From contig JAMWBK010000005.1 of NCBI GenBank assembly GCA_029953675.1, positions 3,123,198 through 3,187,197 on the forward strand: a stretch of 64,000 nt of DNA, given 5' to 3'. The notes beneath the pieces are model-generated. The model was not told the DNA's origin. It was given only the letters and a program-made list of their open reading frames with translations, and made no database searches. This document shows, one piece after another, positions 25,001 through 64,000 of this stretch (the stretch's first letter is position 1; every line of letters starts with the position of its first letter). Origin of the DNA: Rhodosorus marinus CCMP1338 (Eukaryota > Plantae > Rhodophyta). The position numbers were made by a program, and so were the translations under genes.

Positions 25001-25001
25001 G

Positions 25002-29206: not shown

Positions 29207-29446
29207 TGTTAGAACTTGCCCTGACAGCTGTGTAATCTATGTAAGACACTCCCTACTTTAGTGTAAGATCTCACTACTTTAGTGTAAGATCCCTACTTTA
29301 GTGTAAGACGCTAGTGTGCTAGTATTTCTACTTTACTGTCAGGCACGTCTTAGTTTACAGTTACCAAGACTATATAAGACCTAGCATTGCTAGATCTTGA
29401 GACCTAGAATGGAGTAAAGGACAAGTTGGTTAGAAGAGTTATAACA
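29207..29446 (+). repeat. Gypsy 3' LTR
   Basis: Copy of 24761-25000. Confidence 0.95.
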
Positions 29447-30147
29447 CCATGCTTGCTTCTTGGTTATATGGATACTGCGTACCAAGTCCTATCTACTTTG
29501 TTGAAAACGCCTCCTGCGCAGAGATATGTTTTAGCGAATAAGGTCTTGACACGCGCCCGCGTTTCTTTAATGCTTGATTTTGACCGTTTCTCTTTCCAAT
29601 CCCTCGCCCCTTCGGATCTCCTTGATCGGTTTCGGCCCATTTTGAGCGGCTTTCAACGGTTCAGAAAAACCCGCTAGATCGGCTCCCAAATAGGGGTTTT
29701 CTCCATGCTCCTGTCCAAGATTTGCCTTGCCTCGGAAACTTCGCTTTTGGAGAATCATCCTGACTTTCCTCGGGTGTTTCCGCTGGGCGTCTTTCTGTCG
29801 GTGCGGAGCCCCGTGACGACGTGGGGAAGCCACCCTCTATGGATGTACATGTCGACCCTGAGGTGGACCCGCTCGCCATTGAGCCGAGCACCCCTTCGCG
29901 CTTTGGCTCAGGGGAGGGTCTCCGGCTCATTAGGGGCTATCTGTGCCTCCCTCTCCTCTTTGCGTGCCCCTAAGCTCAAGCGTCCTCTCTTGGCGCCAGT
30001 TGCGGCAGGCCCCTAGTTTTTGGTTTCGTGAGGGTGTATGGTGCTGGCTTTTGGTGGTTTTGAGTCGCTATTGTGTTCTTCGGTGGGAGGCGCTTCTTTC
30101 TGCAGCCTTTCCCCCGCATCTTCTAGTGGTGTGGTGCGTGCTGGGGG

Positions 30148-34500: not shown

Positions 34501-34701
34501 GCTTCGGCACTAGCACATCGCTTGGTACCCCTGATCATTGAGTGCTTTGGGTTCATGGACTCTGTTGGTTCTCGCTGGCTTCGGGAGTTGTTCCGCGAAC
34601 GCCCTGACCGTCTTCAATCGTTGTTTACCCGCTTAAGTTTCCTGCTGTGGCGCATGAATGCCGCTTTGATGTTGGAGGCGCGAGTACTTCGCCGCGCTTA
34701 G
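31553..34701 (+). pseudogene. CRE-B copy 2 ORF2 (RT plus REL), one frameshift at G-run 33436-33440
   Basis: ORFs 31274-33487 and 33463-34701 join as RLGGLGLCNRVVVQPAAAVG if one G is added. Confidence 0.9.
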
Positions 34702-34836
34702 TCTTTTTTTCCCCTCGGGGTTTTTTTTTTCAGCCTCCGATTAAACCATTCATTCATTCAGTTGCGGGGGGAAATCCTTCTGATTCCGTTGCGGATTCGC
34801 ATCCCGTAGACGCTTCCTCCGTGGTGAGGGAGCAGG

Positions 34837-37800: not shown

Positions 37801-38346
37801 TGACCTAAATGCGCGTCGCAGTGAGTACATTGACATATACATCCCTTGTCCTCAGGCGAGCAGGGACCGAGACGTGGGGTATGAGGTCCCTCTGGCGGTG
37901 GCATCGGAAATTGCTGATGAGAGTGACGCCCCAGCGGTCCAGCGGGTAGCGGATCTCGTTGTGTCTGACCTAAATGCGCGTCGCAGTGAGTACATTGACC
38001 TCTCCATCCCTTGTACTCAGGCGACCAGGTACCTGCCTGCGTCCGCTCGGCGTCGAGGAGCTGCAGCTCGGTCCATGCGGCGTGTGAAAGAATCGCAGAA
38101 TGCGGCAGCGATGTCAAACCCTACCTTTCTCGATTCGGCGGTGACATACCGGTTTGTCCCCTTCATTATTGAATGCTTTGGCTTGATAGATAGTGTAGGT
38201 TCTCGCTGGCGCGAGATATCTTTCGCAACGACCCAGGGCGTCTAGATAGTCTGCTCACGGAGCTTTCTTTGACCCTGCGGCGGTCAAATACTGCTTTGTT
38301 TGTAGACAGTCGTCATCTCCGCGTTGTCCCTCGCTTCTCAGGGTAG
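34837..38346 (+). pseudogene. CRE-C ORF2 (RT plus REL), decayed
   Basis: RPIGMCEALRK, VNFGNAFN, QQVDPLGP, FHDD, LPVRLGG, HLLASC, RHMR, VADL and FIIECFG motifs across several frames. Confidence 0.88.
37534..38024 (+). repeat. In-frame 165-bp (55-aa) tandem triplication inside the CRE-C endonuclease
   Basis: Units start at 37534, 37699 and 37864, each encoding ..YEVPLAVASEIADESDA.AVQRVADLVVSDLNARRSEYID... Confidence 0.93.
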
Positions 38347-42104: not shown

Positions 42105-43745
42105 CTAAGATTCTGGGGCGAGCTTTTCAATCACATACGTGCCGACGGGAATGCCTTCAAAGTGCTCGTCCAGAAGAGACGTGATAGGGCGCCTTTCTCC
42201 TGGTGCATAGGGCATATTTCCAGACGTAAATGAATCACCCGCGTCTGTCCCAGCGTCGTAAGCGCCTAGCGAACCCTCAAGGCGGTCGACAAATTCTCCC
42301 GCGACGACATCGCAAGCGTTGATCTTGGAAAACCCGCTGAACCAGTCCGGGCTCGGCGCGAGCATCGCTATACCCGATAGGTAGGATCGAGTGGTGTGGA
42401 CCTCCAGGGCGTAAATCCTCGTCTCCGTCCCACTTGAACCTGAGGGATCCACAGCCCTCTGGAAAACATTGCGGTAGTTTTCCGCCTTGAGCTCATTCAC
42501 CAAAGCGGATGTAGCCCCAGTCTCAGCGACCATCTGCACACCCTCCGACGCGTACCCAAGCTCCGCCCACAATGTGTATTCAAGACCGTGACTAACGAGA
42601 GCGAAGGGTGATATGTTTCCGCCCGGAGGATAGGAGTTTGGATGAGTTGCCGAACTCCAGCTCCAGGTCAGGGTCACCTTGTAGGTAACCTTACCCTTAC
42701 ACGGGAATCGGAGGAACACAGGCGAACGCGACGATGATGCGTCGCATACGCCTTCGGCTGCCTCTAAAGCATTAATGGCGGAAGGTGGAAGGCAGTCTTT
42801 CCCAAGGTCTCCAAGACACTCTGAGTAGTTGCCTATCTCGTTGCAACAGGTCTCGATCACCGCTTCGTCACCTGCAAGGACGGCAGCTAGGCAGGTTGGG
42901 CGGATGAACACGCCGCAGTCGGCTACAATCTCACAGCTTGTTGGTTCCGGAGTCGGCTTGGCCTCGCAGATACTCTGCCCAAGCGTCAATATCTCAAGAT
43001 TCGCTTGATACGCGGCCTCTACGATCGGATTCTCACACTCTACCTCGTTGAATTCCAGGCAGGAGAGCGTTGAAGCAACCTCGTTGCAGCATGGTAAGAG
43101 CCCTTCAATCTCTTGATCAATAATCGCTTCCAGTGCCGCACTGTAACATTGAGGCCTTATGAATGATGCACAATTAGCGATGACTTCAAGGCAGTTATCG
43201 TCCGGCGTCGGGAACGGCGATGGTACTGCGGTAGGAATACCTACACACTTCTCAAGACCGGCAGCGACAGAGTTGAATGCCGTGTCGGGAAGACACTGCT
43301 CAGTAAGATCTATACCGATACAGTCTACCATGTCAATCAGCTCCTGGCAGCAGCCCTCAACTTCGTCCGGATTTCCCGCTTCCAACGTCTCTTCACATCT
43401 AGATGTGATGAGAGTCCCACAGCTAAGGACTGGAACGAAGCAAGACTTGATCTCAAGAGCGTTACAGAAAGTTTCACCCTCCAGAACAGGTGCGGCGAAC
43501 TCCCCAACAACCTCAAGAAGGCATTTCTCTGCAGAATCACCGAGGCACGTGAAAATTTTTTTGGTCTGATCGCAGCAGGGTATGATGCCTTCCTCGTTAC
43601 CCTCCACAAGCTCAGCCATACACTCCTCCGTGATGAACGGGAGACAATCCTTCACGATCCCACACTCTTCGCTAACGTTGCCAGGGTCGCCAATCACAAA
43701 GCTTACGAGCAGCAGAGCTGCCATAATACTAACTTTCACCGCCAT
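42105..43745 (-). CDS. Secreted protein: signal peptide, four 8-Cys repeats and a C-terminal Spondin_N domain
   Basis: Hydrophobic N-terminus; repeats of the form C-x5/7-C-x7-C-xn-CC-x9-C-xn-C-xn-C; Spondin_N motifs H...Y.LW..LGYASEGVQMVAETG, MLAPSPDWFSG and AYDAGTD. Confidence 0.88.
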   Translation of the reverse strand: MAVKVSIMAALLLVSFVIGDPGNVSEECGIVKDCLPFITEECMAELVEGNEEGIIPCCDQTKKIFTCLGDSAEKCLLEVVGEFAAPVLEGETFCNALEIKSCFVPVLSCGTLITSRCEETLEAGNPDEVEGCCQELIDMVDCIGIDLTEQCLPDTAFNSVAAGLEKCVGIPTAVPSPFPTPDDNCLEVIANCASFIRPQCYSAALEAIIDQEIEGLLPCCNEVASTLSCLEFNEVECENPIVEAAYQANLEILTLGQSICEAKPTPEPTSCEIVADCGVFIRPTCLAAVLAGDEAVIETCCNEIGNYSECLGDLGKDCLPPSAINALEAAEGVCDASSSRSPVFLRFPCKGKVTYKVTLTWSWSSATHPNSYPPGGNISPFALVSHGLEYTLWAELGYASEGVQMVAETGATSALVNELKAENYRNVFQRAVDPSGSSGTETRIYALEVHTTRSYLSGIAMLAPSPDWFSGFSKINACDVVAGEFVDRLEGSLGAYDAGTDAGDSFTSGNMPYAPGERRPITSLLDEHFEGIPVGTYVIEKLAPES

Positions 43746-47127: not shown

Positions 47128-49290
47128 TTTACTGGTGGTTCTACTAAGATGGGTTTTATTGGGTTTTACTGGGTTTAATGACTTGACTTTACTGGACTTT
47201 GGACTTTACGAGCATAGCCTGAAGCGCTACGCAAGGCGTGAAGATGAACTAATAACTAGGGAGGGAAGTATGCAACCCCAGGCGCCGATGGCGCGCCTCG
47301 GAAAGCATGTCGCTGGATTATCGCCAAAGGGAGACACTTAAACGCCTCAAGAGCGCCAAATATTCAGTAGGATGCTCAGCAAAACATTTCCGCAACCACT
47401 CTAAACCCGACTTATCGACGTGACCAAAGCTTTTCACAATGAATGGCTGGAACCGGTGAGAGCGACCCTCAGCGCAAGGCAGACTGGCCATGCTCTCAGC
47501 ATACCGTCGTTCCTTAACTCTTCGAAGGGCTGAAGCCGCGGCCCCCCGGCGGCGGGCGGCTGCGGTGAGGTGGGCGCTGGCCACGGGGCAGGTAATCGCA
47601 AGGTCCACATATGTTGAGCATCTGGCAGCAGCGTCAGAGACGAGGAGATCGGCTATACAACGGGGCGGTGCAGAGTCCGAGATTGATCTGGGCAGTTCCG
47701 ACTCAACCTCAACCGTATGCCCTATCCGAGTCAAAAATTCGCTGAGGATGTACCTGAGGCGAGTGTGACGCCTCGTACGGAGACCTCGCAACAGTCCGCA
47801 GGAACCCAGGAAGTGGTAGCCACAAGCGTCAATCCGGCTCTCACATCCCTGACAGAAAGACGGCCGATTAGAGTGCCACGGAGCCTGTGGCAAACCGAGA
47901 TAGATCCGTGCGGCAGAACGGAACTGGAAAGCATCGAGACGATGACTCAATGACGACGGTAGAGTGGTTAACCACAAGTGCGAGAGGTGGCCTCCCATGC
48001 CGCGGAGACGAGCGGCAGTGGTAGGCGGCGTGAGAGGAGAATTGAGCATGACTGTGTGAGCGGCACTGTGTTGGCCCCAGGTGAGGCTATGTTGAATCAC
48101 ATCAGTGCGGGAGCTCCACAATCGGCTCAAACCCGGGTAGTCTGCAACAGGGGACCCGGGGCTAGCCTCTCCGTCATCGGCAAGAACTCGGTCGAGGGGA
48201 CAATCCTCAATCGCTTCAGCTCGTCCCCATAACAGCTCCCTCCAGGAACGAAAGCGGGACCGATTTGCGTCCAGCACGGCGTTGCACCTCCTGAACGCGT
48301 GTTGAAGACCATCATAAATTGTCAAAAGCGGGGGCGGCAGGCTCACTGGATCCTCGTTGGTCAAAGCTCGAGCCAAGAGGCAGGCACTTCGCATCTGGAA
48401 GGTCACCAACGTTCGCAGCGCGGTAGCCCAGGAGGCAACCGCCGCTGGCGAGCATACCAGCCCACGGTCTGCGACGCCGAATCCCCCTAATCGCAACGGT
48501 AGAGCGATCTGTGCACGGATAAAGTCCCTGTCGGGAGCAGCTTCAAGATCGAGGGGCTCATCCAAGAGCGTTCCCCAGTGTTGCAGGGTCATTTCGTCGG
48601 CTTTAGCCGCGATCCACGAGCCCCAAGCTGGAGGCAGGCTGCGCAACCAGTAGTTGAGTCTGGGACCGGCACAAAAGCGGGAAAGCAAGCGGGCCGATTG
48701 CAGCATGCTGTCGGGTAGGTGCTCAATGGCGTCGGTGAGTTGCTTGTGCCGTGCCAAAACTCGCTCGCAGGATGCTTGGACAAAGTTGTCAGTCCCCAAT
48801 CCGACGCCGTGGTGTTCGAACCCTTCACGTTCGCTGATTAGTCGCAGAGTGGGTGGCAGAGAGTTTAGCGACACGTCCCTCGCGGGGAGAAAGCGACATT
48901 TTTCTGTTTCCACAGTCAAACCGACGCGACGTGCAATCGCTTCGATCGCGGTCAGTCCCCTAGCCAGGGTGCAGGGGGTGCCCAGCAATGTTACGTCATC
49001 GTGGTACGCGCAGATTCGAAGATCCGAGACCTCAGTCGAAAGACGTAAAAGTACGAGCTGTAGGGCACAGGCATGAAGAAGAGGTCCGCAAGGGTCGCCT
49101 TGTTGGACGCCAGTATGTGCTTGAAAAACAGTGCCCTCCGTTGTCAAGTAGGGGAGGCTCTCCCCTCCGTAAATACCCGATAGAAACGGCCACGCCTCCG
49201 GAAACACACGTCGGAGCACCTCTAGCGCATGCGTCCGCGACACGCTGTTGAATGCGTTCCGGAAATCAACCACCAAGACTCCCCACTCCG
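47128..49290 (-). mobile_element. CRE-D 5'-truncated copy 2 (ORF 47318-49276, RT plus REL)
   Basis: Close homolog of 8926-10974; repeated AGTAAAGTC-type tail. A further CRE-D 3' end lies head-to-tail at ~49298-49395. Confidence 0.9.
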
Positions 49291-49474
49291 GCCTACTAAC
49301 TGGACTTTACTAGCATAGCCTGAAGCGCTACGCAAGGCGTGAAGATGAACTAATAACTAGGGAGGGATCCATGCAACCCCAGGCGCCGATGGCGCGCCTC
49401 GGAAAGCATGTCGCCGTTAATTACTAGCATGGTTGCCCTCGAAACCGTAATCACCCGTATCGCCCTAAGCCATG

Positions 49475-51954: not shown

Positions 51955-52200
51955 CAATGAACGAATGAATGGGTTTAATGAGTGAATGTGAGACTGCAAT
52001 CAACGGTTGGGAAAAGGGGCTACGATCGGCGAAGATCGCGGGCCTCCAACATCGAAAGCAGCGTCTATATGCACGACAGCAGGAAACTTTGACAGGTAAA
52101 CAGCGTTGGAAAAGGCGGTCAGGGAGAGTGTTCCCGGGAACAACCCTTTTGGAAGCCAACGAGAGCCAACGGAATCCATAAAAACCAGACCTATACTTGA
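51955..52200 (-). mobile_element. Degraded CRE-B-like 3' end with (ATTC)-like tail
   Basis: 52028-52195 aligns by eye to 13186-13335; tail TTAAACCCATTCATTCGTTCA. Confidence 0.7.
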
Positions 52201-52552: not shown

Positions 52553-52691
52553 AACGGCTTTTTTCTCCCCAACGGCTTTTTTCTCCCCAACGGCTTTTTT
52601 CTCCCCAACGGCTTTTTTCTCCCCAACGGCTTTTTTCTCCCCAACGGCTTTTTTCTCCCCAACGGCTTTTTTCTTCCCAACGGCTTTTTTT
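52553..52691. repeat. 18-bp minisatellite (AACGGCTTTTTTCTCCCC) x7.7
   Basis: Units start at 52553, 52571, 52589, 52607, 52625, 52643, 52661 and 52679. Confidence 0.95.
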
Positions 52692-52777: not shown

Positions 52778-52823
52778 GGTTACGGCTGGACTTTTGGTGT
52801 TACGGGGTTACGTTAGTCTGGGG
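52778..52823 (+). repeat. Most proximal telomeric tract of the distal array (degenerate, then exact)
   Basis: GGTTACGGCTGGACTTTTGGTGTTAC followed by GGGGTTACGTTAGTCTGGGG (52804-52823). Confidence 0.85.
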
Positions 52824-52824
52824 A

Positions 52825-52970
52825 CACGTCGTGTCGACGAAGCAGACTATGACATCGTCCCTATCTTAGAACGTAGCCACACAACCCATTAGGGGTTTCT
52901 TTGCTGACCAATAGGATCCTTATTGCTTCTTAATGGGCTCCAATAGGGAGTTCTTCAGTAAAGTGTACGC
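52825..52970 (+). mobile_element. TelCRE-2 5'-truncated copy (146 bp)
   Basis: Matches 63580-63725; followed by telomeric tract 52971-53004. Confidence 0.93.
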
Positions 52971-53004
52971 GGTTACGTTAGTCTGGGGTTACGTTAGTCT
53001 GGGG

Positions 53005-53247
53005 ACTATACACCTGGATCAGCGGGCAACGCAAGTAAGTGAGGCTCGGGCGATCTTGAACCGCACTTTGTGGAAAGGAAACGCTATCCTTGCCACCCAG
53101 GCACGTCGTGTCGACGAAGCAGACTATGACATCGTCCCTATCTTAGAACGTAGCCACACAACCCATTAGGGGTTTCTTTGCTGACCAATAGGATCCTTAT
53201 TGCTTCTTAATGGGCTCCAATAGGGAGTTCTTCAGTAAAGTGTACGC
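53005..53247 (+). mobile_element. TelCRE-2 5'-truncated copy (243 bp)
   Basis: Matches 63483-63725; followed by telomeric tract 53248-53266. Confidence 0.93.
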
Positions 53248-53266
53248 GGTTACGTTAGTCTGGGGT

Positions 53267-53340
53267 AATGTAAGTAATTCTCTAGTTAGTGATAGACTCA
53301 GTGTTACGCCGCATTAGGCGGCTGCCCAATAAAGCTTACA
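53267..53340 (+). mobile_element. TelCRE-3: 74-bp 3' end of a third telomeric family
   Basis: ...GCCGCATTAGGCGGCTGCCCAATAAAGCTTACA resembles but differs from the TelCRE-1 end; followed by telomeric and degenerate repeats at 53341-53384. Confidence 0.7.
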
Positions 53341-53384
53341 GTTACGTTAGTCTGGGGTTATGGGGTTACGTTAGTATGGCGTTT

Positions 53385-56300
53385 GGACGGCTTTGTTTGT
53401 GAAAAACGACGGAAAAAGGTGATAAAAAGTTACAAGTATGATTGTGAAGGAGGTACGCGGGCCGTACCCCGAGCCTCTTGTGATCGCGGGCCCACACACC
53501 TCGGGTACCCGCGAAATGGAGAGGGCGAAAGAGCTGCTACAAGAGCAGCAGCAGCAGCAGCAGCAACAGCACCAGTATAGGGGAGCAGAACAGGAGGCAG
53601 AGAGGAATGCAGAACAGGGTGCCGCGGAGCAGGCCACAGCAGACCCAGCTGTCGCCTTTCTCCACCAACTGCAGAGCTACGACCACTGCTATACCGCCCT
53701 GGGAATCGGCCAGTCGGACATCGCCGACTTCTACCAGGCCGCCTTCAACCTCTATTCCCGCATCAACTGCTCAAAAGAACTTCAATCAGTGACAGGACGT
53801 CTGAATGAGCTCGCCAAAAAACCGCATATGTGGCAAGACGGACGAGCCACTACGACCCCGCCTCAACCCCCGCAGCAGCACCCGCGGACGGCGGCGGTCA
53901 ATCAACATGCGGCAGAACCCATCATCAATCAACTTGCGGAGGGGACAGGTGTCCTTGCCTCACTGGACTATGCCACGGCCTTCCCGGTTGCCGGTATCAG
54001 CAGCACACGGCCAACGTACGCTCAGAGGACTGCCCAAAGTACTCCAGCTCGAGAATCAGAGGCTCAACTCCGACCAGCCGGGCGCCCGGGCCCACAGAGC
54101 CAGCAGGCAGCGCTACGACAGTTGCACGCCACTGTGGGAGGGTCCTCCTGGGGACCTGAGACCAAGCCGGTACTGGCGACCCTGAGGAATGTAAGACCGC
54201 CACGGATGGACGAGGTAGCCCCATCGGATTTCACCACGGTCCTTTGCAGAGCCTTGGGGATTCCGAGCTCTTTTGTGGCGCACGTGGACTTCATCGCTTC
54301 CCATGCGTGCTTACTCTGCCATCCGGACGCGATTCCGATTCTACAAAGCGCCATCTCTCGGGGCGTTTTCAGGACGGGCATCTTCGGTTCGTTCACCCAG
54401 AGACACCCCGATCGGCAAGTGACTCTCTACACGGGCCAGGCACTGGATACAGACAACCTGTTGGGCTACAATGAACGTCAGCTCATTGCCCCAGCGAATA
54501 TCGGGGCTCAGACCCTGAAACGGGCGATTGAACAGACTATCCGGATCCGCGCGAGACTCCGCAGAAGGCAACTCTCGTTCAACACACTCGCAGCGATACA
54601 CGAGTACCTGGAGAGCAGACTCGGAGCCCTACAAGCCACACAACGTACTCCAACGGTACCCGGGGAGAGCGCGGAACCCCCAGCGCCTGCAGCCGCCACG
54701 AACGCAGACCCTGAAGCCTCGTCCCTTCCAGGGGATGTACAGGCAGACCGTGGGAGAGTTGACGCCTCGGTTGAGACCAGTGCGACTTCCCAAGTACCTG
54801 AGAACGCAGCACACGAAGACAATCCCCATGCGGAGCTCCTCTGCAACCTTCCGGAGCCACCTCAACAGAAGCGCTCGCGAGTGGCCGCCGATGGCACCGG
54901 ACCGGATACTGAGATGACTCCGGCAGCCGTGGAGACTCCACAGGATACCACTGGGACACAGGTTGCCGTTGACGGCAACCATCACGCGATGGACACGCAG
55001 GAGAGCCAGGAAAACCCAGCGCAATAATGCCGAGCAGACGTAGGGGAATCAAACGACGCCGCGAAGAGCCTCTTTTCTTCTCGGATCGTCAAGACTGGAT
55101 CAGGCGGTGGAGCGTCTTCGTCGACGACGTCACGGAAGGAGGCAGGCAGTGGACGCGCCTTACACACTGCCCGGTTCCCACACGGCGATTTGTGCCACGC
55201 GCCCAGGTTCACACATGGAGCTGCCTCTTCCGTGCTGCATTAGAGCTCTCTATGGACAGCACCGCACCAGCAAACGCCAGCCTGCTTCTTGTCGGACTTC
55301 CAGGCCTTGTCCTCGGACACTCTGCACTTGATGTTGGCATTCAGGTATCGCATGTGCTTGAAGGAGAATTCTCTACGGTCTGGAGCGCTCTAGAGGACAA
55401 GGCGTCTATGCTGTCGCGTACTACCGCACCGCAAGGAGCTGAAGCGGTTCGACGCAAACATCTCGGGCGCCACAAGCGAGCGCTGAAACTAGCACACCTT
55501 GGCCGCCTTTCAGATGCAGCTCGGAGCCTACAGGCCACCGAAATGGCACCTTTTACCGCGGCTACGTGGAGACAACTACAAGCGCTCTTTCCCAACCCGG
55601 CAGAAGGTGACTTACCAGACGAGATTGCACACGCACTGCAATCTTTGCTCGCTCTGAATACCGAAACACTAAAGCGGCGGTGGGATTCAAGAAAAGCGGC
55701 CGACGAGGGCCTCATGTCGATCGTGGCACGTCTTCCTCAGGGCAAGAGCCCAGGTCCTAGCGGTCTCCGAGCGGAACACCTCCAAGGTGCAACCCAACAG
55801 ACGCAAGTGGCGTTGATTCGTGTATTGCGACAACTGGCGACCGCTCCTGAGAAATTTTCCCCGGCTCTGACCCGCGCCCTTCGCAGTAGTCGACTCCTGC
55901 CGTTCACGAAGCCTAACAAGGGTTCAGTGCCGCAGGAGCATCCCGGAGTTCGCCCTATCGGAGTGCCAGAAGTTTTGCGCAAGGTAGCAACGCAATGGAC
56001 TCTTCACGCGGTTATGGACAGGGTGCATGAGCTCCTGGTGCCCTTACAACTGGGTATAGGAGTAAGTGGCGGGTGCGAACGCTCGCTTCACGCGATCCAG
56101 GCCCATTTGTCATGCGAACCCGATTCGGTGGTCCTTCGCTTAGACCTTGAGAATGCCTTTAATCGCATCGACCGACGCCTTGCCAAGCAACTGGTGGACG
56201 AACACTTGCCGGAGCTTGCACCAGTGTATAGACTTGGCTATGGAAGCGACAACGCGGACTCACCGACGCTCTGTGGCTGGCGATCTTCCCCTGGACAGAA

Positions 56301-57492
56301 CGAAACCGACACCTCTCGCCTGACTCTCCAAGCAACTACAGGAGTCCAACAGGGAGATCCACTGGGGCCGGTGCTACATGCACTATCCCTGGCGCCCTTT
56401 CTACGAGCGTTGCGAGCCAAGTTCCCCAACGAAACCATTGTTGCTATCCACGACGATATCACGATTGTCGGGTCGCTACAAGCCGTGAAGGCGTCCCTGG
56501 CATGGGCAAAAACTGTGCTCCCCTCTCTTGGAGCACGCCTGCAACTCGGCAAGTGCACTGTGTACGGGCGAACACTGACTACCACGCGAGTGGTCAACCA
56601 TGAGATTCCTGGAGTGCAAGTGACCAGAGACGGAGTCACCATCCACTCGATACCGATAGGCAGCCGAGAATATATCGAACAGGAGTGCCGGGGGTTGCAA
56701 AATAAGCATGAGAAACTCTTTGAGGAAATTGCCAAGCTCCCACAACCGGAGCTTACGACGCAAATTGCCCTCTTCAGGTTCTGTGCAGAAACGCGACTAG
56801 ACTATGTGCTACGATGCCTCGCATACGAGTTTGGAAGAAATCTGGCACGCGAGGCCGACGTGATGACCAGATATCACCTTGAAATTCTATTCGGAGGCCT
56901 CGCTACGACAGCTGTAGAGGACGATGAGTACGCAGAGCTGATCTCGGACCAAATCGCTCTGCCCTGCCGCTGGGGAGGTTTGGGTTTCGCTACTCGAAAG
57001 CGCGTCCAACCCATCGCGTTTTACTCGTCATGGAGAAACACCTTCCGGAACAATGAAGATGAATGGCCGTACCTGACTGAACTAGAGCGGGAGGTTACGG
57101 CAGAACGCTCACCAGACACATACGAGCCGATGGATCAACGATGGTCGACTGCACAGCTGGCGGACCAGATCTGTGCATCGTCGCGAGCAATACAACGGAG
57201 GCTCGGACCAGAAACCCCGCCGCGGATCTTGGCACTGACTACCCTGCAACAACCGCGAGAAACATCTCTTCGAAGCGCCCCGGGCGAGACTGCAGCTTGG
57301 AATAATGGTTCAATACAACAAACCCTCTCTCGAGAAGCACACCATTGCGCATTCCAAAAGCTGGTCACCAACCCACGAATCTCCCCTGAAAACCGAGCTC
57401 GAATACGGTCTGCCGCGGGATCCGGGTCGGGAGTCTGGCTACGTGAAATACCAACGCTGACACCGAAAAAATTGAGTGCGGTTGAGATGCAG
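53385..57492 (+). mobile_element. TelCRE-1, 5'-intact copy whose 3' ~750 bp is replaced by an inversion
   Basis: Begins GGAC right after telomeric repeats; ORF1 plus RT; diverges from the 2.9-kb copy at 57493. Confidence 0.92.
53438..55027 (+). CDS. TelCRE-1 ORF1 (529 aa, polyQ, no CCHC knuckle)
   Basis: Intact ORF with TYAQR and NVRP...VDF...HAC motifs; stop overlaps the ORF2 start (TAATG). Confidence 0.85.
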   Translation: MIVKEVRGPYPEPLVIAGPHTSGTREMERAKELLQEQQQQQQQQHQYRGAEQEAERNAEQGAAEQATADPAVAFLHQLQSYDHCYTALGIGQSDIADFYQAAFNLYSRINCSKELQSVTGRLNELAKKPHMWQDGRATTTPPQPPQQHPRTAAVNQHAAEPIINQLAEGTGVLASLDYATAFPVAGISSTRPTYAQRTAQSTPARESEAQLRPAGRPGPQSQQAALRQLHATVGGSSWGPETKPVLATLRNVRPPRMDEVAPSDFTTVLCRALGIPSSFVAHVDFIASHACLLCHPDAIPILQSAISRGVFRTGIFGSFTQRHPDRQVTLYTGQALDTDNLLGYNERQLIAPANIGAQTLKRAIEQTIRIRARLRRRQLSFNTLAAIHEYLESRLGALQATQRTPTVPGESAEPPAPAAATNADPEASSLPGDVQADRGRVDASVETSATSQVPENAAHEDNPHAELLCNLPEPPQQKRSRVAADGTGPDTEMTPAAVETPQDTTGTQVAVDGNHHAMDTQESQENPAQ

Positions 57493-57534
57493 TGTGGGTT
57501 CGAAGGCCCCTGCGTTGGTAGCGTCGCGGAGTAG
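55027..57534 (+). CDS. TelCRE-1 ORF2 reverse transcriptase (CRE-like), truncated before the REL domain
   Basis: KSPGPSGLR, RPIGVPEVLRK, LDLENAFN, GVQQGDPLGP, IHDD and LPCRWGGLG motifs. The last 13 codons come from inverted DNA. Confidence 0.92.
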   Translation: MPSRRRGIKRRREEPLFFSDRQDWIRRWSVFVDDVTEGGRQWTRLTHCPVPTRRFVPRAQVHTWSCLFRAALELSMDSTAPANASLLLVGLPGLVLGHSALDVGIQVSHVLEGEFSTVWSALEDKASMLSRTTAPQGAEAVRRKHLGRHKRALKLAHLGRLSDAARSLQATEMAPFTAATWRQLQALFPNPAEGDLPDEIAHALQSLLALNTETLKRRWDSRKAADEGLMSIVARLPQGKSPGPSGLRAEHLQGATQQTQVALIRVLRQLATAPEKFSPALTRALRSSRLLPFTKPNKGSVPQEHPGVRPIGVPEVLRKVATQWTLHAVMDRVHELLVPLQLGIGVSGGCERSLHAIQAHLSCEPDSVVLRLDLENAFNRIDRRLAKQLVDEHLPELAPVYRLGYGSDNADSPTLCGWRSSPGQNETDTSRLTLQATTGVQQGDPLGPVLHALSLAPFLRALRAKFPNETIVAIHDDITIVGSLQAVKASLAWAKTVLPSLGARLQLGKCTVYGRTLTTTRVVNHEIPGVQVTRDGVTIHSIPIGSREYIEQECRGLQNKHEKLFEEIAKLPQPELTTQIALFRFCAETRLDYVLRCLAYEFGRNLAREADVMTRYHLEILFGGLATTAVEDDEYAELISDQIALPCRWGGLGFATRKRVQPIAFYSSWRNTFRNNEDEWPYLTELEREVTAERSPDTYEPMDQRWSTAQLADQICASSRAIQRRLGPETPPRILALTTLQQPRETSLRSAPGETAAWNNGSIQQTLSREAHHCAFQKLVTNPRISPENRARIRSAAGSGSGVWLREIPTLTPKKLSAVEMQCGFEGPCVGSVAE

Positions 57535-58382
57535 TTGGAAGGCGGTATGATGAGCGATGACGTGTACATGATGATCAAAGTAGTCCAGCTGGAGCAGCGA
57601 ATTTTTCTGAAGGCCGGCTAGGCGCTCGATATCCCAAGCATGATGGGCCTTGCTTCTGGTGGAGTCCCGAGGTCGAGCATTGAGTAGCACAAATGCATCA
57701 ATGTCCTTCTGGCTCTGGTACTGCAGCCCATGAATGCTCGCGAAAAACGAGCGATTGGCAGCTGCTGGGGTCTGGTTGGCGCGGACACGTGTCGTCCAGC
57801 TCATTGGTTGAGGTTGAGCTCGAGTCCTTGTCCGTGCTTGCTCATTGGCCGTTGCGAGATCTGGGAATGCATTGGAATCGAGATCACGTGTCTCGGGAGA
57901 TCGCGGGCGGGCTGCTGCAGTGGCGTAGTTTGCTGGTTCGTAGACAGGGAGGGGGCGTTGTGCCCTCGGGGCAGCTTTTTGTGGCGTCGTAGTCAGATTG
58001 TGAAGGAGTTGAGCCTCGGTGCCATTGGCGTGTGCCTGGGCTAAGAGACCCATAAACCGCAGCATAAGCCCATTGTAGAGCGGGGTCTTATGCTTGGGCG
58101 CGTCGAGATGCAGCTTCAGCGCTCCGCAGCTCAGGTCAATAGCCAAGGGAGTAGGTACGTCGTTGTCAAGTGCAGATGCAGTTGTAGGCTCAGAAACAGG
58201 TACGGGCAGAGGCTCGGGTCCGTCTGCCCTCAGGCTAACGGCCGGGAGGTCTTCCATCGTTGCGTCTGTGCAAAAGCCCCCCCCATCCGGAGGCACGGGC
58301 TCGAGAGTAGTCATATCACTCGATAAGCGTTCGTAGAAAGAATGAAAGTGTAACTTTATCACCACGATAAACTCCAAAGTCC
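57494..58382 (-). mobile_element. Inverted TelCRE-2 5' end (UTR plus N-terminal ORF1)
   Basis: Reverse complement of 58911-59799 with at least three substitutions. Confidence 0.93.
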
Positions 58383-58423
58383 AACCCCAAATCCCAGACT
58401 TTTTACCCCAGACTAACGTAACC
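58383..58423 (-). repeat. Inverted (C-rich on +) telomeric tract between a TelCRE-1 3' end and a TelCRE-2 5' end
   Basis: Contains ACCCCAGACTAACGTAACC. Confidence 0.88.
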
Positions 58424-58723
58424 GTAAGCTTTACTGGGCAGCTGCCTACTGCAGCGCAACACTACGTCTAATCCTATCTAGGGAAAAACTTACTGGAACC
58501 CCGCTACCGGGGTCTCATGCTACGTTCAAAAGAAAAAACAGGTACCAGCGGATTCTCCAGCTGGTCCACGCGCAAAGCGCCTAATGCTATCTCTGTGTTA
58601 CCTCGCCATAGTTGCCGGTTTATCTGGGATCTCACGTCTCTCAGCTCCTCACTCCTGTGCAGTAAGTGCTTGCAGCTGTCCCGGAGGAACTCCTGTGCCC
58701 CAGTCCTTCCGTGTTTACTCCGG
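58424..58723 (-). mobile_element. Inverted TelCRE-1 3' end with an internal deletion
   Basis: 58424-58699 corresponds to 3617-3892 and 58698-58723 corresponds to 3206-3231. Confidence 0.88.
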
Positions 58724-58910
58724 GGTTACGTTAGTCTGGGGTGGCGCAGGCCTAGCGATGAGAACACGAATACAACCCCTCGCCTTCTTCAGCAGTTGGC
58801 GACAGACTCTGAAGCTCAATTGGACTGGATCTAGCCACCTAGGAGCGCTACTCGATGCCTGCACATCTGGGGTTAGTCTGGGGGTCTGGGGTTGACGTTA
58901 GTCTGGGGTT
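58722..58910 (+). repeat. Telomeric and degenerate repeats enclosing a 131-bp internal TelCRE-2 ORF2 fragment (58737-58867 = 62460-62590)
   Basis: Direct sequence identity; TGGGGT and TC microhomologies at the two joins. Confidence 0.88.
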
Positions 58911-58978
58911 GGACTTTGGAGTTTATCGTGGTGATAAAGTTACACTTTCATTCTTTCCACGAACGCTTATCGAGTGAT

Positions 58979-60499
58979 ATGACTACTCTCGAGCCCGTGC
59001 CTCCGGATGGGGGGGGCTTTTGCACAGACGCAACGATGGAAGACCTCCCGGCCGTTAGCCTGAGGGCAGACGGACCCGAGCCTCTGCCCGTACCTGTTTC
59101 TGAGCCTACAACTGCATCTGCACTTGACAACGACGTACCTACTCCCTTGGCTATTGACCTGAGCTGCGGAGCGCTGAAGCTGCATCTCGACGCGCCCAAG
59201 CATAAGACCCCGCTCTACAATGGGCTTATGCTGCGGTTTATGGGTCTCTTAGCCCAGGCACACGCCAATGGCACCGAGGCTCAACTCCTTCACAATCTGA
59301 CTACGACGCCACACAAAGCTGCCCCGAGGGCACAACGCCCCCTCCCTGTCTACGAACCAGCAAACTACGCCACTGCAGCAGCCCGCCCGCGATCTCCCGA
59401 GACACGTGATCTCGATTCCAATGCATTCCCAGATCTCGCAACGGCCAATGAGCAAGCACGGACAAGGACTCGAGCTCAACCTCAACCAATGAGCTGGACG
59501 ACACGTGTCCGCGCCAACCAGACCCCAGCAGCTGCCAATCGCTCGTTTTTCGCGAGCATTCATGGGCTGCAGTACCAGAGCCAGAAGGACGTTGATGCAT
59601 TTGTGCTACTCAATGCTCGACCTCGGGACTCCACCAGAAGCAAGGCCCATCATGCTTGGGATATCGAGCGCCTAGCCGGCCTTCAGAAAAATTCGCTGCT
59701 CCAGCTGGACTACTTTGATCATCATGTACACGTCATCGCTCATCATACCGCCTTCCAACTACTCCGCGACGCTACCAACGCAGGGGCCTTCGAACCCACC
59801 AGAGGAGCACACCTGCCTCCTGATCAACGTATCCAAGCTGTCAAGCTCTCTCCAACGTCACACGAATACCTGAGCATGAGGGAAAAGCTCCGTCACCAAC
59901 CGGCAGACTATCCCCGCGCTGCACTGATCCACAACCTGCTCCGCTACCGACGGATCCAGCGGATTGTTACAAATCGCAGGAGTCTCCCACCCAACAACCG
60001 AGAGGCACTCCTGGGCCACGTCAGGGCCGAGCTCGATCGCACCCTGGCCAGCCTCCACGCTCACGCTCAACGAGCACCCGACAGTTGCCTGCGCGTGCCA
60101 TTCTCCGACCCTGAGCTTCCAGAGCACTCGACAACAACCGAGCGCAGAGAGCCACGCTCTCTGGACCGAACCCGGGTAGCTGACCCTCAACCGGCGGCAC
60201 TGGAGAGGGAGAGTGCGGAACCCCTCGCAGCGACTACGCATAGCGCTGATTCTGCCCAAGTCCCAGCCGCTCGGGAGGACAACACGCCTGAGACGCCTGC
60301 CGCGACAGCCCGTGATCCACTAGACTCGGAGCCTGACCCCTCCACCACTAGCGATCAACCAGTGACCCCTGCAGAGCCGATGCAAGGACTTTCGACGGCC
60401 CAAGACAAGAGACAAGTGGCTCCACCCACTAAGCGCCCTAAGCCTGCCAACGCCGTCGACGACCTCACGCCCGACTCCCTCTCGTCGACTCAATCATGA
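58979..60499 (+). CDS. TelCRE-2 ORF1 (MTTLEPVPP..., ~506 aa)
   Basis: Intact ORF; ATGA overlap with ORF2. Confidence 0.85.
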   Translation: MTTLEPVPPDGGGFCTDATMEDLPAVSLRADGPEPLPVPVSEPTTASALDNDVPTPLAIDLSCGALKLHLDAPKHKTPLYNGLMLRFMGLLAQAHANGTEAQLLHNLTTTPHKAAPRAQRPLPVYEPANYATAAARPRSPETRDLDSNAFPDLATANEQARTRTRAQPQPMSWTTRVRANQTPAAANRSFFASIHGLQYQSQKDVDAFVLLNARPRDSTRSKAHHAWDIERLAGLQKNSLLQLDYFDHHVHVIAHHTAFQLLRDATNAGAFEPTRGAHLPPDQRIQAVKLSPTSHEYLSMREKLRHQPADYPRAALIHNLLRYRRIQRIVTNRRSLPPNNREALLGHVRAELDRTLASLHAHAQRAPDSCLRVPFSDPELPEHSTTTERREPRSLDRTRVADPQPAALERESAEPLAATTHSADSAQVPAAREDNTPETPAATARDPLDSEPDPSTTSDQPVTPAEPMQGLSTAQDKRQVAPPTKRPKPANAVDDLTPDSLSSTQS

Positions 60500-63400
60500 G
60501 CAGCTCCTCAGACGAATATACTCCGAACCGCTCTCGCTCATCCCGCCGTGCTCGTGCTCGTCGCCAACGACCTCCCACTTCGACGCAGTCACTCTTCGAG
60601 ACCGACTCGAACGCCTGGCTCTCGTCTCTGCACGACTTCACTCTCAACGTAACCGATAATGGCAACCGCTGGTGGCAGCTGACTCAGGCTCCGACGCCTA
60701 CTCGCCAATTCGTCCCCGATAACCTGAAAACACGCTGGAACCATCTCATGTCGAAAGCCCTGGAACTTGCCCTTGATACGTCAGCGCCGAACCTGTCACG
60801 CCTGTTCATCTTCGCTCTCCCCAGTCTCGCACTCGGCTACACAGGCGACCTGGCCCCTTCTGCGCAGATGCTCGCCGTTATGGACGGAAGGTTCTCCACG
60901 GTGTGGGAACACCTTACTGCTCACAGCAAAACCCTTGACACCAAGTGTATCGTACCTCCGCCGCCTCAGACCCGCCACCGACAGAAACGAGCCCTACAAC
61001 TCGCCAAAGCTCAACGTATGTCCCAGTCTAGCCAACTCCTACTGGCCACCGATCTTGCCTCGAAGACTCCTGCCACCTGGCGCGTTCTGACTACGCTCTT
61101 CCCTGAGTACGAGGCCGCAACGCTCTCCTCGGAGCTTGAAGACGCCCTACAGGCAAAGCTCAACGGACTGCAACGCAATATATGGGACCCGACTTTGGCC
61201 TCTGACGAGAGCCTCCTGTCAACGCTGGAACACCTACCGTACGCCACAGCCCCCGGGCCGAGTGGACTCAAAGCCGAACATCTGCGAAGTCTCACCATGA
61301 CAACGCAACCGGTACTTGTACGCTTCCTTCGCAAGCTTGCCACCACTCCGGAGAGCTTCCCTGACGTGTTTCTCGAAGCCATGCGCAGCAACCGACTCCT
61401 CGCGAAAGACAAGCGAACGTCTGCCGAAGCTAGACAAGGGTACCCTCTTCGCCTACGCCCGCTAGGGATTCCTGAGGTACTGCGGAAGGCCGTCACCCAA
61501 TGGACACTTCGCGCTGTCGCCACGCCCTTCGCGACTTTCTGCTCCCGGAACAACTCGGCATCTCGGTCAGCGGCGGCTGCGAACACGCCATCCACCTCGC
61601 GGAAGCCCACCTCGCAGCGCGCCCGAATGACGTGCTCCTCAAACTTGATCTCGCAAACGCGTTCAACAGAATCGACCGACGCCTCGCAAACCGTATCATC
61701 GAGCTAGCTTTCCCCGAATTGAAGTCGCTTATGACAATGAGCTACGGACCACGAGGCGAGAGCGCCCCACGCCAATTCGGATGGCGAGACAGCGATGTCG
61801 ATGACTGGCTCCAGCTCCGAGCCTGGACTGGAGTCCAACAAGGCGATCCGTTGGGACCTGCTTTACACGCGCTCGCCCTTTCCCCACTCCTACGAGCACT
61901 ACGAGACCGGTTTCCGAGGATCACCCTTAGCGCAATCCACGACGACCTCACCTTACTTGGCCCTCTGAAGGACGTGAAAGAAGCGCTACACTGGAGCGAG
62001 CACCACCTCCCCGAAATAGGCGCACAACTTCAAAGGACGAAATGCGAGCTTTTTGGACTCCAACTGCCGACGACCAGACTCGTCAACAGGGAAATTCCCG
62101 ACGTACATGTCACCCGGGACGGAATCCAACTTTATTCCATCCCTATTGGCACACGGACCTACGTCCAAGACGCGAACAGGAAGCTACAACGAGAACATGA
62201 AAAACTCGTCCAAGAGGTCATCCGTCTACCGACCACTGAGCTACCAATTAAACTGTGCCTATTCCGCTACTGCGCAGGACCGCGTCTAGACTTTGCTCTA
62301 CGCACGCTCGCCCTACAATACGGAGCCAATCTCGCACGCGAAGCCGATCGCATCTCGCTCCTGGAACTCGACAAACTGTGCGGCTCGCTCCTCGAAGGCC
62401 AGGGCCTCACAGGACCCGCAAAAGACGTGGTCGAAGCGCAGATCCAGCTCCCTTGCCGATGGGGTGGCGCAGGCCTAGCGATGAGAACACGAATACAACC
62501 CCTCGCCTTCTTCAGCAGTTGGCGACAGACTCTGAAGCTCAATTGGACTGGATCTAGCCACCTAGGAGCGCTACTCGATGCCTGCACATCGACGAACCTG
62601 ACCGAGCACCATCACATTCGACCCCTGCTCCACTCGACGGATCAACTTGGAGCACAACTAATCGAAGCGAGCCTCCACTCAAAACGCTGCCTGGCACGAG
62701 GAACACCGGCCCCCATACTCCGCCTAACAGAATGGCAATCGTTGGAGAGCCAAGAACAAGCAGAGAACCCGCACACACCACCCGACAGGCCCTTGATCGG
62801 TTCAACCCAAAAACTCCTCTCCAACTGGAGTCACCGACGGGCATTCGAGGAAATGGTGGAGAACGCGGAGATCAGCGAGACGGCACGTGCGCGAATACGC
62901 TCCTGCAAGGGATCAGGAGGGGGTACTTGGCTGCGAGACTTGCCAAGGAAACACGGACGCGGCCTAAGTAGCGGAGAACTGAACCTGAGCCTTCGACAAC
63001 TGTTGGGATTACCCCTGCCGGGTGTACGAATACTTGGTACGTGTACGATATGTTCCCAACCACACGACGCTGCAGGCATTCAACGCCTTCACCACTGCAC
63101 CAGCTCTACCGGCAGTTGGACAATTCGGCATAACATGGTCAGGGACGCCCTGGCGACAGTGCTGAGACAATGGCGACTAGAAGTGACAATAGAACCGACC
63201 GGACACTACCAAGGCAGTCGGCTTCGGCCTGACATTCTAGCCCGACACCCACGAACAGGCAAGCTCTACGTGATCGATGTGAAGGTGACCTCGCCTTTGC
63301 AAAGAACACACCTCCACAAAGCGTCTTGGGAGACCGGGTATGCGGCACGGAAAGCGGAAAAGTTTAAAGAGTCCAAATACCGTGACAGTATCGGAGAACA

Positions 63401-63647
63401 TAACGACGACATCTTCGTCCCCTTCTGCCTGGAAACATTTGGGCAGATGGGACAACAAGCGAGTGAGTTCCTCAAGGAAGCGACTATACACCTGGATCAG
63501 CGGGCAACGCAAGTAAGTGAGGCTCGGGCGATCTTGAACCGCACTTTGTGGAAAGGAAACGCTATCCTTGCCACCCAGGCACGTCGTGTCGACGAAGCAG
63601 ACTATGACATCGTCCCTATCTTAGAACGTAGCCACACAACCCATTAG
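60496..63647 (+). CDS. TelCRE-2 ORF2 (RT plus Zn finger plus REL, ~1050 aa) with a single 1-nt frameshift near 61518
   Basis: RPLGIPEVLRK, LDLANAFN, GVQQGDPLGP, IHDD, CTIC..HHC, RHNMV, RPDI, DVKVTSP, AEKFK..KY and FVPFCLETFG motifs. Adding one base at ~61518 restores colinearity with TelCRE-1. Confidence 0.9.
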
Positions 63648-63725
63648 GGGTTTCTTTGCTGACCAATAGGATCCTTATTGCTTCTTAATGGGCTCCAATA
63701 GGGAGTTCTTCAGTAAAGTGTACGC

Positions 63726-64000
63726 GGTTACGTTAGTCTGGGGTTACGTTAGTCTGGGGTTACGTTAGTCTGGGGTTACGTTAGTCTGGGGTTACGTTAG
63801 TCTGGGGTTACGGGTTACGTTAGTCTGGGGTTACGTTAGTCTGGGGTTACGGGTTACGTTAGTCTGGGGTTACGTTAGTCTGGGGTTACGTTAGTCTGGG
63901 GTTACGTTAGTCTGGGGTTACGTTAGTCTGGGGTTACGTTAGTCTGGGGTTACGTTAGTCTGGGGTTACGTTAGTCTGGGGTTTACGTTAGTCTGGGGTT
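63726..64000 (+). repeat. Terminal telomeric array (GGGGTTACGTTAGTCT)n, 16-nt unit
   Basis: About 16 units running off the window end, G-rich strand 5'->3' toward the end. Variants: extra GGGTTAC at 63812 and 63851, and GGGGTTT near 63982. Confidence 0.92.

Follow-up and report, generated by a model that had tools for sequence, protein, structure and literature searches.

The last 11.2 kb of a 64,000-nt stretch of the genome of Rhodosorus marinus CCMP1338 (contig JAMWBK010000005.1; the whole stretch is termed 'the window' below, and coordinates count its first letter as position 1) very probably represent a natural chromosome end, in which a 16-nt unit, GGGGTTACGTTAGTCT, forms the telomere and in which a group of retrotransposons without long terminal repeats (LTRs), here named TelCRE, inserts into the repeat itself. 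This reading rests on the base-by-base composition of the end, the fold and clade of the element protein, the recurrence of the same components at a second chromosome end, the single phase in which the elements join the repeat, and one copy far from the telomere that is flanked by a duplicated piece of the telomere unit. A preliminary description of the window had implied an algal host, and the host is indeed a red alga.

Organization of the chromosome end

Every base from 52778 to 64000 could be assigned (by self-BLAST, listing of junctions and reading of the sequence) either to one of eight telomere tracts (508 bp in all) or to retrotransposon (10,715 bp), in agreement with the preliminary description, which had found nothing but the 16-mer and TelCRE sequence from 52.8 kb onward; its view that elements build much of the chromosome end is likewise borne out, as they make up ~95% of the terminal 11.2 kb. 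When at most one mismatch is allowed, the 16-mer occurs 22 times in the window, on the + strand only and always at or beyond position 52804 (shuffled sequences gave 0.01 occurrences). The terminal array, placed by Tandem Repeats Finder at 63726-64000 (16.2 copies of a 16-nt unit), reaches the last base of the window, which is probably also the end of the contig. Apart from 12 perfect units and two 23-mers (each a partial unit, GGGGTTAC, followed by a restart, GGGTTACGTTAGTCT), the array has GCGG in its first unit, an additional T in another, and an incomplete unit at its end.

Outside a single inverted block (57493-58721), which forms the only exception, all elements lie in the sense of the G-rich strand with their 3' ends toward the end of the window, and the most distal of them is joined directly to the terminal array, both as had been described before (Table 1). 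The set of copies also corresponds to the earlier listing, with one 5'-intact element and several 5'-truncated ones, although the lengths of the latter (previously 74, 146 and 243 bp) are corrected here to 74, 144 and 242 bp. Read in its own sense, the inverted block consists of a 5'-truncated tail of the famA family with a ~385-bp deletion, a degenerate telomere tract and the first 896 bp of the famC family; it could have arisen by fold-back repair or by a template switch, or be an assembly error.

The concern that the 11-kb order, or at least the inverted block, is a collage assembled from near-identical repeats in noisy reads has in its favour a Nanopore-based assembly with 6-kb size selection, copies that are 99-100% identical, one frameshift that is a matter of homopolymer length, and a junction at 57492/57493 that displays neither a telomere unit nor microhomology. 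It is nevertheless improbable, because all other junctions follow the phase rule described below, because individual fragments carry private variants (the ~385-bp deletion, degenerate units, differing truncation points), and because an independent chromosome end is organized in the same way, with its pieces in another order, which argues against a one-off misassembly.

That second end (locus L002), which holds the gene for the closest named protein match (from R. marinus), was examined in the last 24 kb of contig JAMWBK010000007.1 of the same assembly (GCA_029953675.1), in a segment that stops 1917 bp short of the contig end. It shares with the window the unit GGGGTTACGTTAGTCT, a 5'-truncated famC element (99.6% identical), a famA-like element (81% identical) and long interspersed nuclear elements (LINEs) of a further family, Y (98% identical). 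Its proximal side holds ordinary genes (V-ATPase subunit C and 2-oxoacid dehydrogenase E2), and degenerate 16-mer units begin at ~8600. These are followed by a 73-bp famA-like tail and AGTTACGTTAGTCTGGGGT, by a famA-like element that is 5'-truncated and split by a family Y LINE, by more Y copies, a telomere tract and a famA-like 5' end that is broken in its first open reading frame (ORF) and continues into TAGTCTGGGGTTACGTTAGTCTGGGGT, and finally by a truncated famC element running toward the contig end. The 16-mer is found 1.4-1.9 kb before the locus stops, and the remaining 1917 bp would be accounted for by the rest of famC (1408 bp) and an array of ~0.5 kb. At the 5' junction of the truncated famC (L002 21415-21448), an inverted 10-mer forms a perfect palindrome, GTCTGGGGT-A-ACCCCAGAC, consisting of the target sequence and its complement and possibly left behind by snap-back or second-strand priming.

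Table 1. Features of the terminal zone and of the internal famA copy, in window coordinates
Feature	Position	Strand	Description
Internal non-telomeric famA copy, 5'-truncated	2893-3902	+	3' end of ORF2 with endonuclease, 3' untranslated region, 10-nt telomere-derived tail GGTTACGTTA
Proximal boundary tract	52778-52824	+	Degenerate, then perfect units; abuts unique subtelomeric DNA (GGTTACGGCTGGACTTTTGGTGTTACGGGGTTACGTTAGTCTGGGG)
famC 3' fragment, 5'-truncated	52825-52968	+	144 bp, 100% identical to 63580-63723
Telomere tract between insertions	52969-53003	+	GCGG unit, one perfect unit, GGG
famC 3' fragment, 5'-truncated	53004-53245	+	242 bp, 98.9% identical
Telomere tract	53246-53265	+	GCGGTTACGTTAGTCTGGGG
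famB (third family) 3' tail	53266-53339	+	74 bp, 83% identical to famA 3' end
Telomere tract, variant units	53340-53377	+	AGTTACGTTAGTCT GGGGTTAT GGGGTTACGTTAGTAT
famA, 5'-intact	53378-57492	+	Cut at 57492 by inverted block
Inverted famC 5' piece	57493-58389	-	First 896 bp of famC, 99.7% identical; head-on fusion to famA ORF2
Inverted degenerate telomere tract	58390-58417	-	
Inverted famA 3' fragment	58418-58721	-	5'-truncated; ~385-bp internal deletion relative to copy at 2893-3902
Telomere unit and GGGG	58722-58741	+	
Internal famC piece	58742-58867	+	Equals 62465-62590, 100% identical, without either end; broken 3' end, then irregular repeats
Irregular telomere units	58868-58910	+	TGGGGTTAGTCT GGGGGTCT GGGGTTGACGTTAGTCT GGGGTT
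famC, full-length	58911-63723	+	4813 bp, joined directly to terminal array
famC ORF2 C-terminal half, linker and restriction-like endonuclease	62000-63647	+	Endonuclease motifs ~63040-63290
Terminal telomere array, G-rich strand 5' to 3' outward	63724-64000	+	277 bp

Identity of the 16-nt repeat

Support for the 16-mer as the true telomere repeat comes from its outward-pointing G-rich strand, from the terminal position of its longest array and from its presence at two chromosome ends. In addition, degenerate units adjoin unique DNA with no upstream element end at both of them (window 52778; L002 ~8600), and in three cases elements broken at their 3' side are directly followed by repeats, often irregular ones (window 58867/58868; L002 20869; L002 21416). 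Because the 3' ends of the elements face the tip, erosion followed by de novo addition of repeats yields exactly such capped, 3'-broken pieces, and the tract at 58868-58910 probably represents the de novo capping of an eroded end. Synthesis of the 16-mer by a putative telomerase is the favoured explanation, of which the partial-unit variants and the irregular units on broken elements may be indirect signs. At 52786-52799, inside the proximal degenerate tract, the sequence CTGGACTTTTGGTG is similar to the 11 nt with which famC begins (TGGACTTTGGAG); an element may here have been eroded to its first bases and then re-capped.

There is a small chance that the 16-mer is not kept by telomerase alone, and that the TelCRE reverse transcriptase (RT) could itself add tracts by priming on the C-rich strand from the 3' ends of element RNAs, in which case the long unit may have been shaped by element tails or derive from them; if true, the telomere repeat and its resident retrotransposons would be mechanistically coupled. 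Also improbable is the reading in which the 16-mer is nothing more than the elements' own RT-made 3' tail, so that the contig would merely end within the tail of its most distal element. Tails of that kind do exist in the window, where family Y LINEs end in (AGTAAAGYC)n and a 3' end resembling that of another LINE family (X) precedes (AACGGCTTTTTTCTCCCC)x7.7; the majority of 16-mer tracts are found immediately 3' to an element end, the tail of the internal famA copy is a 10-nt piece of the repeat, and the telomere sequence is not stated in the R. marinus genome paper. However, an RT-made 3' tail cannot explain repeats on elements that are broken in ORF1 or ORF2, nor does it account for tracts that adjoin unique DNA without an upstream element 3' end at two chromosome ends, for the strict G-outward orientation, or for the position of the longest array at the extreme end; the 10-bp duplication described below, moreover, shows that repeat-like sequence was already present in the internal target.

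Broad surveys of three classes of other, mesophilic red algae detected neither known repeat types nor telomerase products, with negative results in the telomeric repeat amplification protocol (PMC3622300). The 16-mer is not given in the searchable literature, including the R. marinus genome paper; prokaryote genome contigs scanned for three tandem units gave no match, as expected for a eukaryotic sequence, and neither did metagenome contigs scanned for 1.5 units. The repeat is a candidate telomere sequence for mesophilic red algae (class Stylonematophyceae), with a unit that is unusually long outside yeasts.

Target-site phase and an off-telomere copy

All seven 3' junctions in the window, together with one from L002, have the form ...TAC + (nothing, A or GC) + (G)GTTACGTTAGTCTGGGG, and thereby fall into one phase of the 16-nt unit. 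On the upstream side, every flank terminates in the GG...GGTT portion of the unit, mostly as ...GTCTGGGG plus 0-2 nt, with GTATGG (famA) and GTCTGGG (the 242-bp famC fragment) as variants. The truncated copies of 74, 144, 242 and ~1010 bp have intact 3' ends in common. The combination of fixed 3' ends with 5' truncation had been read earlier as typical of target-primed reverse transcription; this stands for these copies and does not extend to the piece at 58742-58867, which lacks its 3' end, or to the inverted famA fragment, with its internal deletion.

The most revealing copy is that of famA at 2893-3902, which lies outside the region covered by the preliminary description. It is found ~60 kb from the chromosome end, in DNA that is otherwise unique, and is 100% identical to the telomeric famA across their 245-bp overlap; the first 52.7 kb of the window contain no further TelCRE copy. 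A 10-bp duplication, GTCTGGGGTT (2883-2892 and 3903-3912), flanks the copy; this 10-mer corresponds to part of the telomere unit, and the two flanks are its only occurrences in the 52.7 kb that precede the telomere zone (0.1 expected). The pre-insertion site was presumably a chance 10-nt piece of the unit, and the element RNA would have supplied further telomere sequence at its 3' end, which together with the site restores 1.25 units in phase. Fixed 3' ends, variable 5' truncation and a flanking duplication, the signatures of target-primed reverse transcription, are thus all present, and the off-telomere copy exposes both the duplication and the probable nick sites, which are normally invisible inside repeat arrays.

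Passive build-up at the ends, through tolerated insertion and subtelomeric recombination without any sequence-specific target, is scarcely credible even in a subtelomere full of other retroelements (copia, gypsy and LINE families X and Y) and with family Y present within the telomeric zone of L002, given eight of eight 3' junctions in one phase (random chance ~(1/16)^7), the telomere-like duplication around the internal copy (0.1 expected in the rest of the window) and the different, non-telomeric flanks of families X and Y. Because those two families have such flanks and tail repeats of their own, telomere targeting is a property of the famA/famB/famC lineage and not of all CRE elements in this genome. 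The earlier proposal that several families have co-adapted to the repeat goes further than what is shown, which is a shared target and phase and not co-evolution.

Coding capacity of the elements

Of the three two-ORF families originally proposed, two have the coding sequence to match, while the third (famB) is represented in the window by a 74-bp tail only. In famA, ORF1 (53438-55027; 529 aa) is followed by ORF2 from 55027 through a TAATG stop/start overlap (55025-55029); ORF2 contains the RT, and the telomeric copy lacks the part encoding the restriction-like endonuclease (RLE, also written REL). In famC, a 5' untranslated region (UTR; 58911-58978) precedes ORF1 (58979-60499; 506 aa) and an ORF2 of ~1051 aa (60496-63647) that overlaps the ORF1 stop through ATGA (60496-60499), and the 3' UTR ends in ...AGTAAAGTGTAC. 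Overlaps of the TAATG and ATGA kinds are arrangements associated with termination-reinitiation. The two ORF2 products are only 44% identical over ~1040 aa, and famA and famC are therefore treated as distinct families. No terminal direct repeats (LTRs) were found on the elements. Copy-to-copy identities of 98.9-100% are counted as a sign of recent activity, and a transcript from the MMETSP collection is 81% identical to famA ORF2.

The claim of one full-length copy is correct with regard to the extent of famC at 58911-63723, with the reservation that its ORF2 is frameshifted as assembled. It is split into frames of 403 and 715 aa at a run of C that is 1 nt shorter (CCC, 61522-61525) than in the famC copy at L002 (99.6% identical), where CCCC is present and ORF2 is unbroken. 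The frameshift must be a mutation private to this copy, unless the Nanopore-based assembly has the homopolymer wrong. A programmed frameshift was considered and rejected, on the basis of that nearly identical copy without a frameshift and of the location in a C homopolymer.

ORF2 comprises an N-terminal extension, the RT, a linker, a CCHC knuckle and a restriction-like endonuclease of the PD-(D/E)XK type, as had been noted from its CRE-type RT and REL endonuclease and as is now supported by profile, structural and phylogenetic comparisons. The RT domain is the sole Pfam match in ORF2 (RVT_1, E 1.7e-9 and 2.7e-11). A profile built from 28 ORF2 homologues matched R2 proteins in the PDB at E 1.2e-42, from the RT fingers through to the end of the RLE, and human L1 ORF2p over the RT only (E 1e-17); the profile was required, as single-sequence PDB searches gave only marginal matches to R2. 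An AlphaFold2 model of the 715-aa famC frame (predicted local distance difference test score, pLDDT, 80.6; predicted template modelling score 0.79) had as its top Foldseek matches the cryo-electron microscopy structures of R2Tg, R2Pm and R2Bm (3.6e-15 to 1.5e-11, over ~740 aligned columns). In the endonuclease, famC displays CTIC (C-x2-C)...HHC, x9, RHN, ..IEP.., RPD, x14 and D-V-K, and famA (in the internal copy) CTSC...HHC, x9, RHD and ..RPD..D(VT). The published REL-ENDO consensus is C-x1-3-C...H-x3-4-C, x9-10, RHD/N, E, R/KPD, x12-14, D/E (PMC12857005), which the spacing of both families fits, except that the H spacing of the CCHC knuckle is slightly off (HH directly before the last C). 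No Pfam match of any kind, whether to an apurinic/apyrimidinic endonuclease (APE), a zinc finger or a Myb domain, was found in the N-terminal 258-342 aa of ORF2, even at E up to 10.

ORF1 encodes an orphan protein. It has no Pfam match even at E up to 10, its only homologue in a database of 5.8 billion clusters is an R. marinus gene in L002, and the famA and famC versions can barely be aligned with each other. In a poor AlphaFold2 model (pLDDT 41), a long helix at the N-terminus is accompanied by a beta-alpha-beta-beta-alpha-beta unit, for which Foldseek returned nothing significant (the best matches, at E 0.03, were RNA recognition motif proteins); an RNA-binding, ORF1p-like role could at most be guessed from such a model.

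The famA-type 3' UTR contains a 5-bp hairpin, GCUGC-AGUAG-GCAGC, ~17 nt from the 3' end (window 3833-3892 and 53280-53339; L002 8661-8720; L001, a transcript-type contig described below, 4059-4118). In famB the stem is GCCGC/GCGGC, with one compensatory pair, and a conserved UGCCCA(A/G)UAAAG follows the hairpin. The structure is a candidate recognition element for the RT, proposed from these few sequences. Rfam and tRNA scans of the window gave no match, and four of its ORFs and the protein P0003 had no exact product on file.

Placement within the CRE group

The RT phylogeny that the preliminary description had called for was built by neighbour-joining from RT domains (277 columns, 200 bootstraps), with the named elements of Table S6 in PMC10088271 as references; these were few, with MoTeR1 among them and CRE1, SLACS and CZAR not. 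A TelCRE clade of famA, famC and two relatives derived from transcripts receives 100% bootstrap support and is in turn grouped at 81% with R. marinus family X, CRE-3_CCri, CRE-2_NV, MoTeR1, GilM and GilT, while R2, R4/Dong, NeSL, Hero and every APE clade fall outside. Sequence relationships of this kind support a classification of the elements as RLE-type, CRE-group non-LTR retrotransposons. They do not fit the R2 clade: Pfam gave no zinc-finger or Myb match in the ORF2 N-terminus, there are two ORFs, and the R2 references lie outside their group. CRE elements are abundant in this genome, where RepeatMasker assigned to CRE/SLACS 2.82 of 2.89 Mb of LINE sequence (98%), or 9% of the genome, according to the R. 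marinus genome paper (a label that points indirectly to the type elements CRE1, CRE2, SLACS and CZAR), and a red-algal CRE element has also been named from Chondrus crispus (CRE-3_CCri, with its RT domain in Table S6 of PMC10088271).

Proposed insertion cycle

The following sequence of events would account for the arrangement. ORF1 and ORF2 would be translated from one RNA, through stop/start coupling at UAAUG (famA) or AUGA (famC). The endonuclease would nick the C-rich strand between the positions that pair with unit bases A12 and G13, to leave 5'-...AACCCCAGAC-3'OH (a predicted cut after ...CCCCAGAC), and this 3'OH end would pair with a telomeric read-through tail of the element RNA, ...UAC-GGUUACGUUA-GUCUGGGGUU, and prime reverse transcription. 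The G-strand would be cut 10 nt downstream, after GTCTGGGGTT. The sequence of the internal site is ATGACGTCTGGGGTTGGTCC. Incomplete reverse transcription would generate the 5'-truncated copies.

Because the element sense is that of the G-rich strand, the 3' G-overhang of the chromosome cannot be used as a primer and an endonuclease step is required, which fits the conservation of the RLE. For the same reason, with 3' ends at the tip, erosion begins at the 3' side of an element. Terminal erosion would thus remove elements from that side, and re-capping with 16-mers (presumably by telomerase) followed by new insertion would build the mosaic. The arrangement suggests cycles of this kind, and the mosaic can be viewed as their record at the tip of an algal chromosome.

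Comparison with known telomeric retrotransposons

Non-LTR elements that are specific for telomere repeats or accumulate at chromosome ends include TRAS, SART, MoTeR, FoTeR, Cnl1, GilM, GilT, Tx1-1_ACar (from a lizard) and Zepp (PMC10088271, PMC12857005). MoTeR1 and MoTeR2 of Magnaporthe/Pyricularia oryzae, the FoTeRs of Fusarium oxysporum and Cnl1 of Cryptococcus resemble TelCRE in belonging to the CRE group, in combining an RT with a C-terminal REL, and in their fixed-orientation insertion in telomere repeats, with truncated copies and unstable ends (PMC12857005, PMC7367193); MoTeR1 is also part of the same 81% group in the RT tree. MoTeR and FoTeR elements have a single large ORF, a TTAGGG-type 6-mer target and 5' ends that face the tip (PMC12857005), in contrast to the two ORFs, 16-mer target and outward 3' ends of TelCRE, and the REL motif reads R-A-D in the former and R-P-D in the latter. 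The target-site duplication is readable for the off-telomere TelCRE copy, whereas the authors of the FoTeR study could not read theirs (PMC12857005).

The SART and TRAS elements differ from TelCRE in their N-terminal APE endonuclease, poly(A) tails and 5-mer target, and their R1 clade is distant in the tree. SART1 of Bombyx lies in the G-strand sense and has a UAAUG stop/start overlap, as does famA. Like TelCRE, SART1 and TRAS1 of Bombyx mori are specific for telomere repeats, have two ORFs and insert in a specific phase, and telomere sequence at the 3' end takes part in their priming (PMC7265360).

GilM and GilT (Genie) of Giardia intestinalis fall into the same 81% group, with a single ORF and with RTs that are distant from that of TelCRE. 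They form tandem arrays that are capped by telomere repeats, rather than being scattered within the repeat tract. PMC10088271 (Fig. S12 legend) describes them as RLE-bearing, CRE-like telomeric LINEs found in arrays at chromosome ends. CRE1/CRE2, SLACS and CZAR of trypanosomatids, the type members of the CRE group, were compared by description only; they are strictly site-specific and share with TelCRE an RT, a REL and the order of motifs, while differing in their target, the spliced-leader gene. SLACS and CZAR have two ORFs. R2 (of Bombyx mori and Taeniopygia guttata) provides the closest solved structures and has the ORF2 fold in common (RT, linker, CCHC and RLE), but differs from TelCRE in its N-terminal zinc-finger and Myb domains, its single ORF, its 28S rDNA target and its separate position in the RT tree.

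The statement that nothing of this kind had been described in algae requires qualification. Zepp, a LINE with copies concentrated at chromosome ends in the green alga Chlorella vulgaris, has been published (PMC10088271, citing Higashiyama 1997), and red-algal CRE elements have been named. Zepp is of the APE type and groups with L1-like elements in the tree, and phase-specific insertion into a telomere unit is not reported for it. What remains of the statement is that, in the open literature that could be searched, no description was found of telomere-repeat targeting by these elements, in red algae or for so long a unit, or of the 16-mer.

TelCRE elements are thus well supported as additional members of a known telomere-specific class, in a new host phylum. 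They extend the telomere-specific CRE-group LINEs, known from fungi and Giardia, to the Archaeplastida, in an orientation opposite to that of MoTeR and FoTeR, and are set apart by a combination of features: a CRE-group RT and RLE, two ORFs with overlaps, a 16-nt target, outward 3' ends and a readable duplication. An RLE enzyme that recognizes a site of 10-16 nt may also, like R2 at present, attract interest as a tool for site-specific insertion.

Points that weigh against a telomere-targeting interpretation

Several observations count against the overall interpretation. Only two chromosome ends were inspected (that of the window and L002 minus its last 1.9 kb), and the Nanopore-based assembly may have produced the inverted block artificially. 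With CRE LINEs occupying 9% of the genome, most CRE copies must be non-telomeric. No intact element is demonstrable in the window, where the full-length famC is frameshifted and famA is truncated, and Pfam identified no DNA-binding domain in ORF2 that would explain target recognition. The tree is distance-based and lacks CRE1, SLACS and CZAR themselves, with a bootstrap value of only 81% at the CRE-group node.

Other repeats and relatives

Relatives of TelCRE were encountered at two further loci. L001 (JGI 3300016967, a 4187-nt transcript-type contig from a Rhodosorus relative) contains a fourth TelCRE-like family, with an ORF2 ~50% identical to that of famC. The element is 5'-truncated, lies within antisense family Y sequence (1-113 and 4095-4187) and has AGTCT, the last 5 nt of the unit, on both sides; this may be another insertion into a telomere-like site away from the telomere, unless the contig was assembled as a chimera. 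Its use as evidence that telomeric copies are transcribed was rejected, as its flanks are those of a family Y LINE and not a telomere. L003 (Pyropia vietnamensis BAAFKR010000030.1:390766-407162) holds a CRE-like LINE, P0124, that is 33% identical to famA ORF2 and is arranged head-to-tail in tandem with a period of ~8 kb; no telomere-type repeats were found at its junctions.

Family Y, a LINE with RT and RLE, is present in the window at 8914-11019 (+), 22440-23148 and 47204-49414 (-), and in L002 at 11556-19743, where it is inserted into a TelCRE-like element. It is 26-27% identical to the TelCRE ORF2s, has (AGTAAAGYC)n 3' tails and non-telomeric flanks, and forms head-to-tail junctions in which the 3' tail of one copy is followed directly by the 5' end of the next. 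Its RLE displays R-x-A-D, as in MoTeR/FoTeR, where TelCRE has R-P-D. Family X is represented by two 4.7-kb copies, 13141-17858 (-) and 30015-34737 (+), which are 99.4% identical, inverted and ~12 kb apart; they bracket a gypsy element and other repeats, and their 3' end is ...CCCCTCGGGGTTTTTTTTTCAGCCTC.

A tandem array of an 18-mer, (AACGGCTTTTTTCTCCCC)x7.7, is located ~90 bp proximal to the first telomere unit (52553-52690), next to a degenerate 3' end resembling that of family X (72% identical; 52009-52182), and is possibly an expanded LINE tail that marks an old subtelomere. Further subtelomeric content lies at 4931-8301 (-), 24761-29446 (+), 37534-38033 and 42105-43745 (-): elements of the copia and gypsy types (the LTRs of the latter being 240 bp long and 98.3% identical), three tandem copies of a 165-bp repeat, and an intron-less ORF with a Spondin_N domain.

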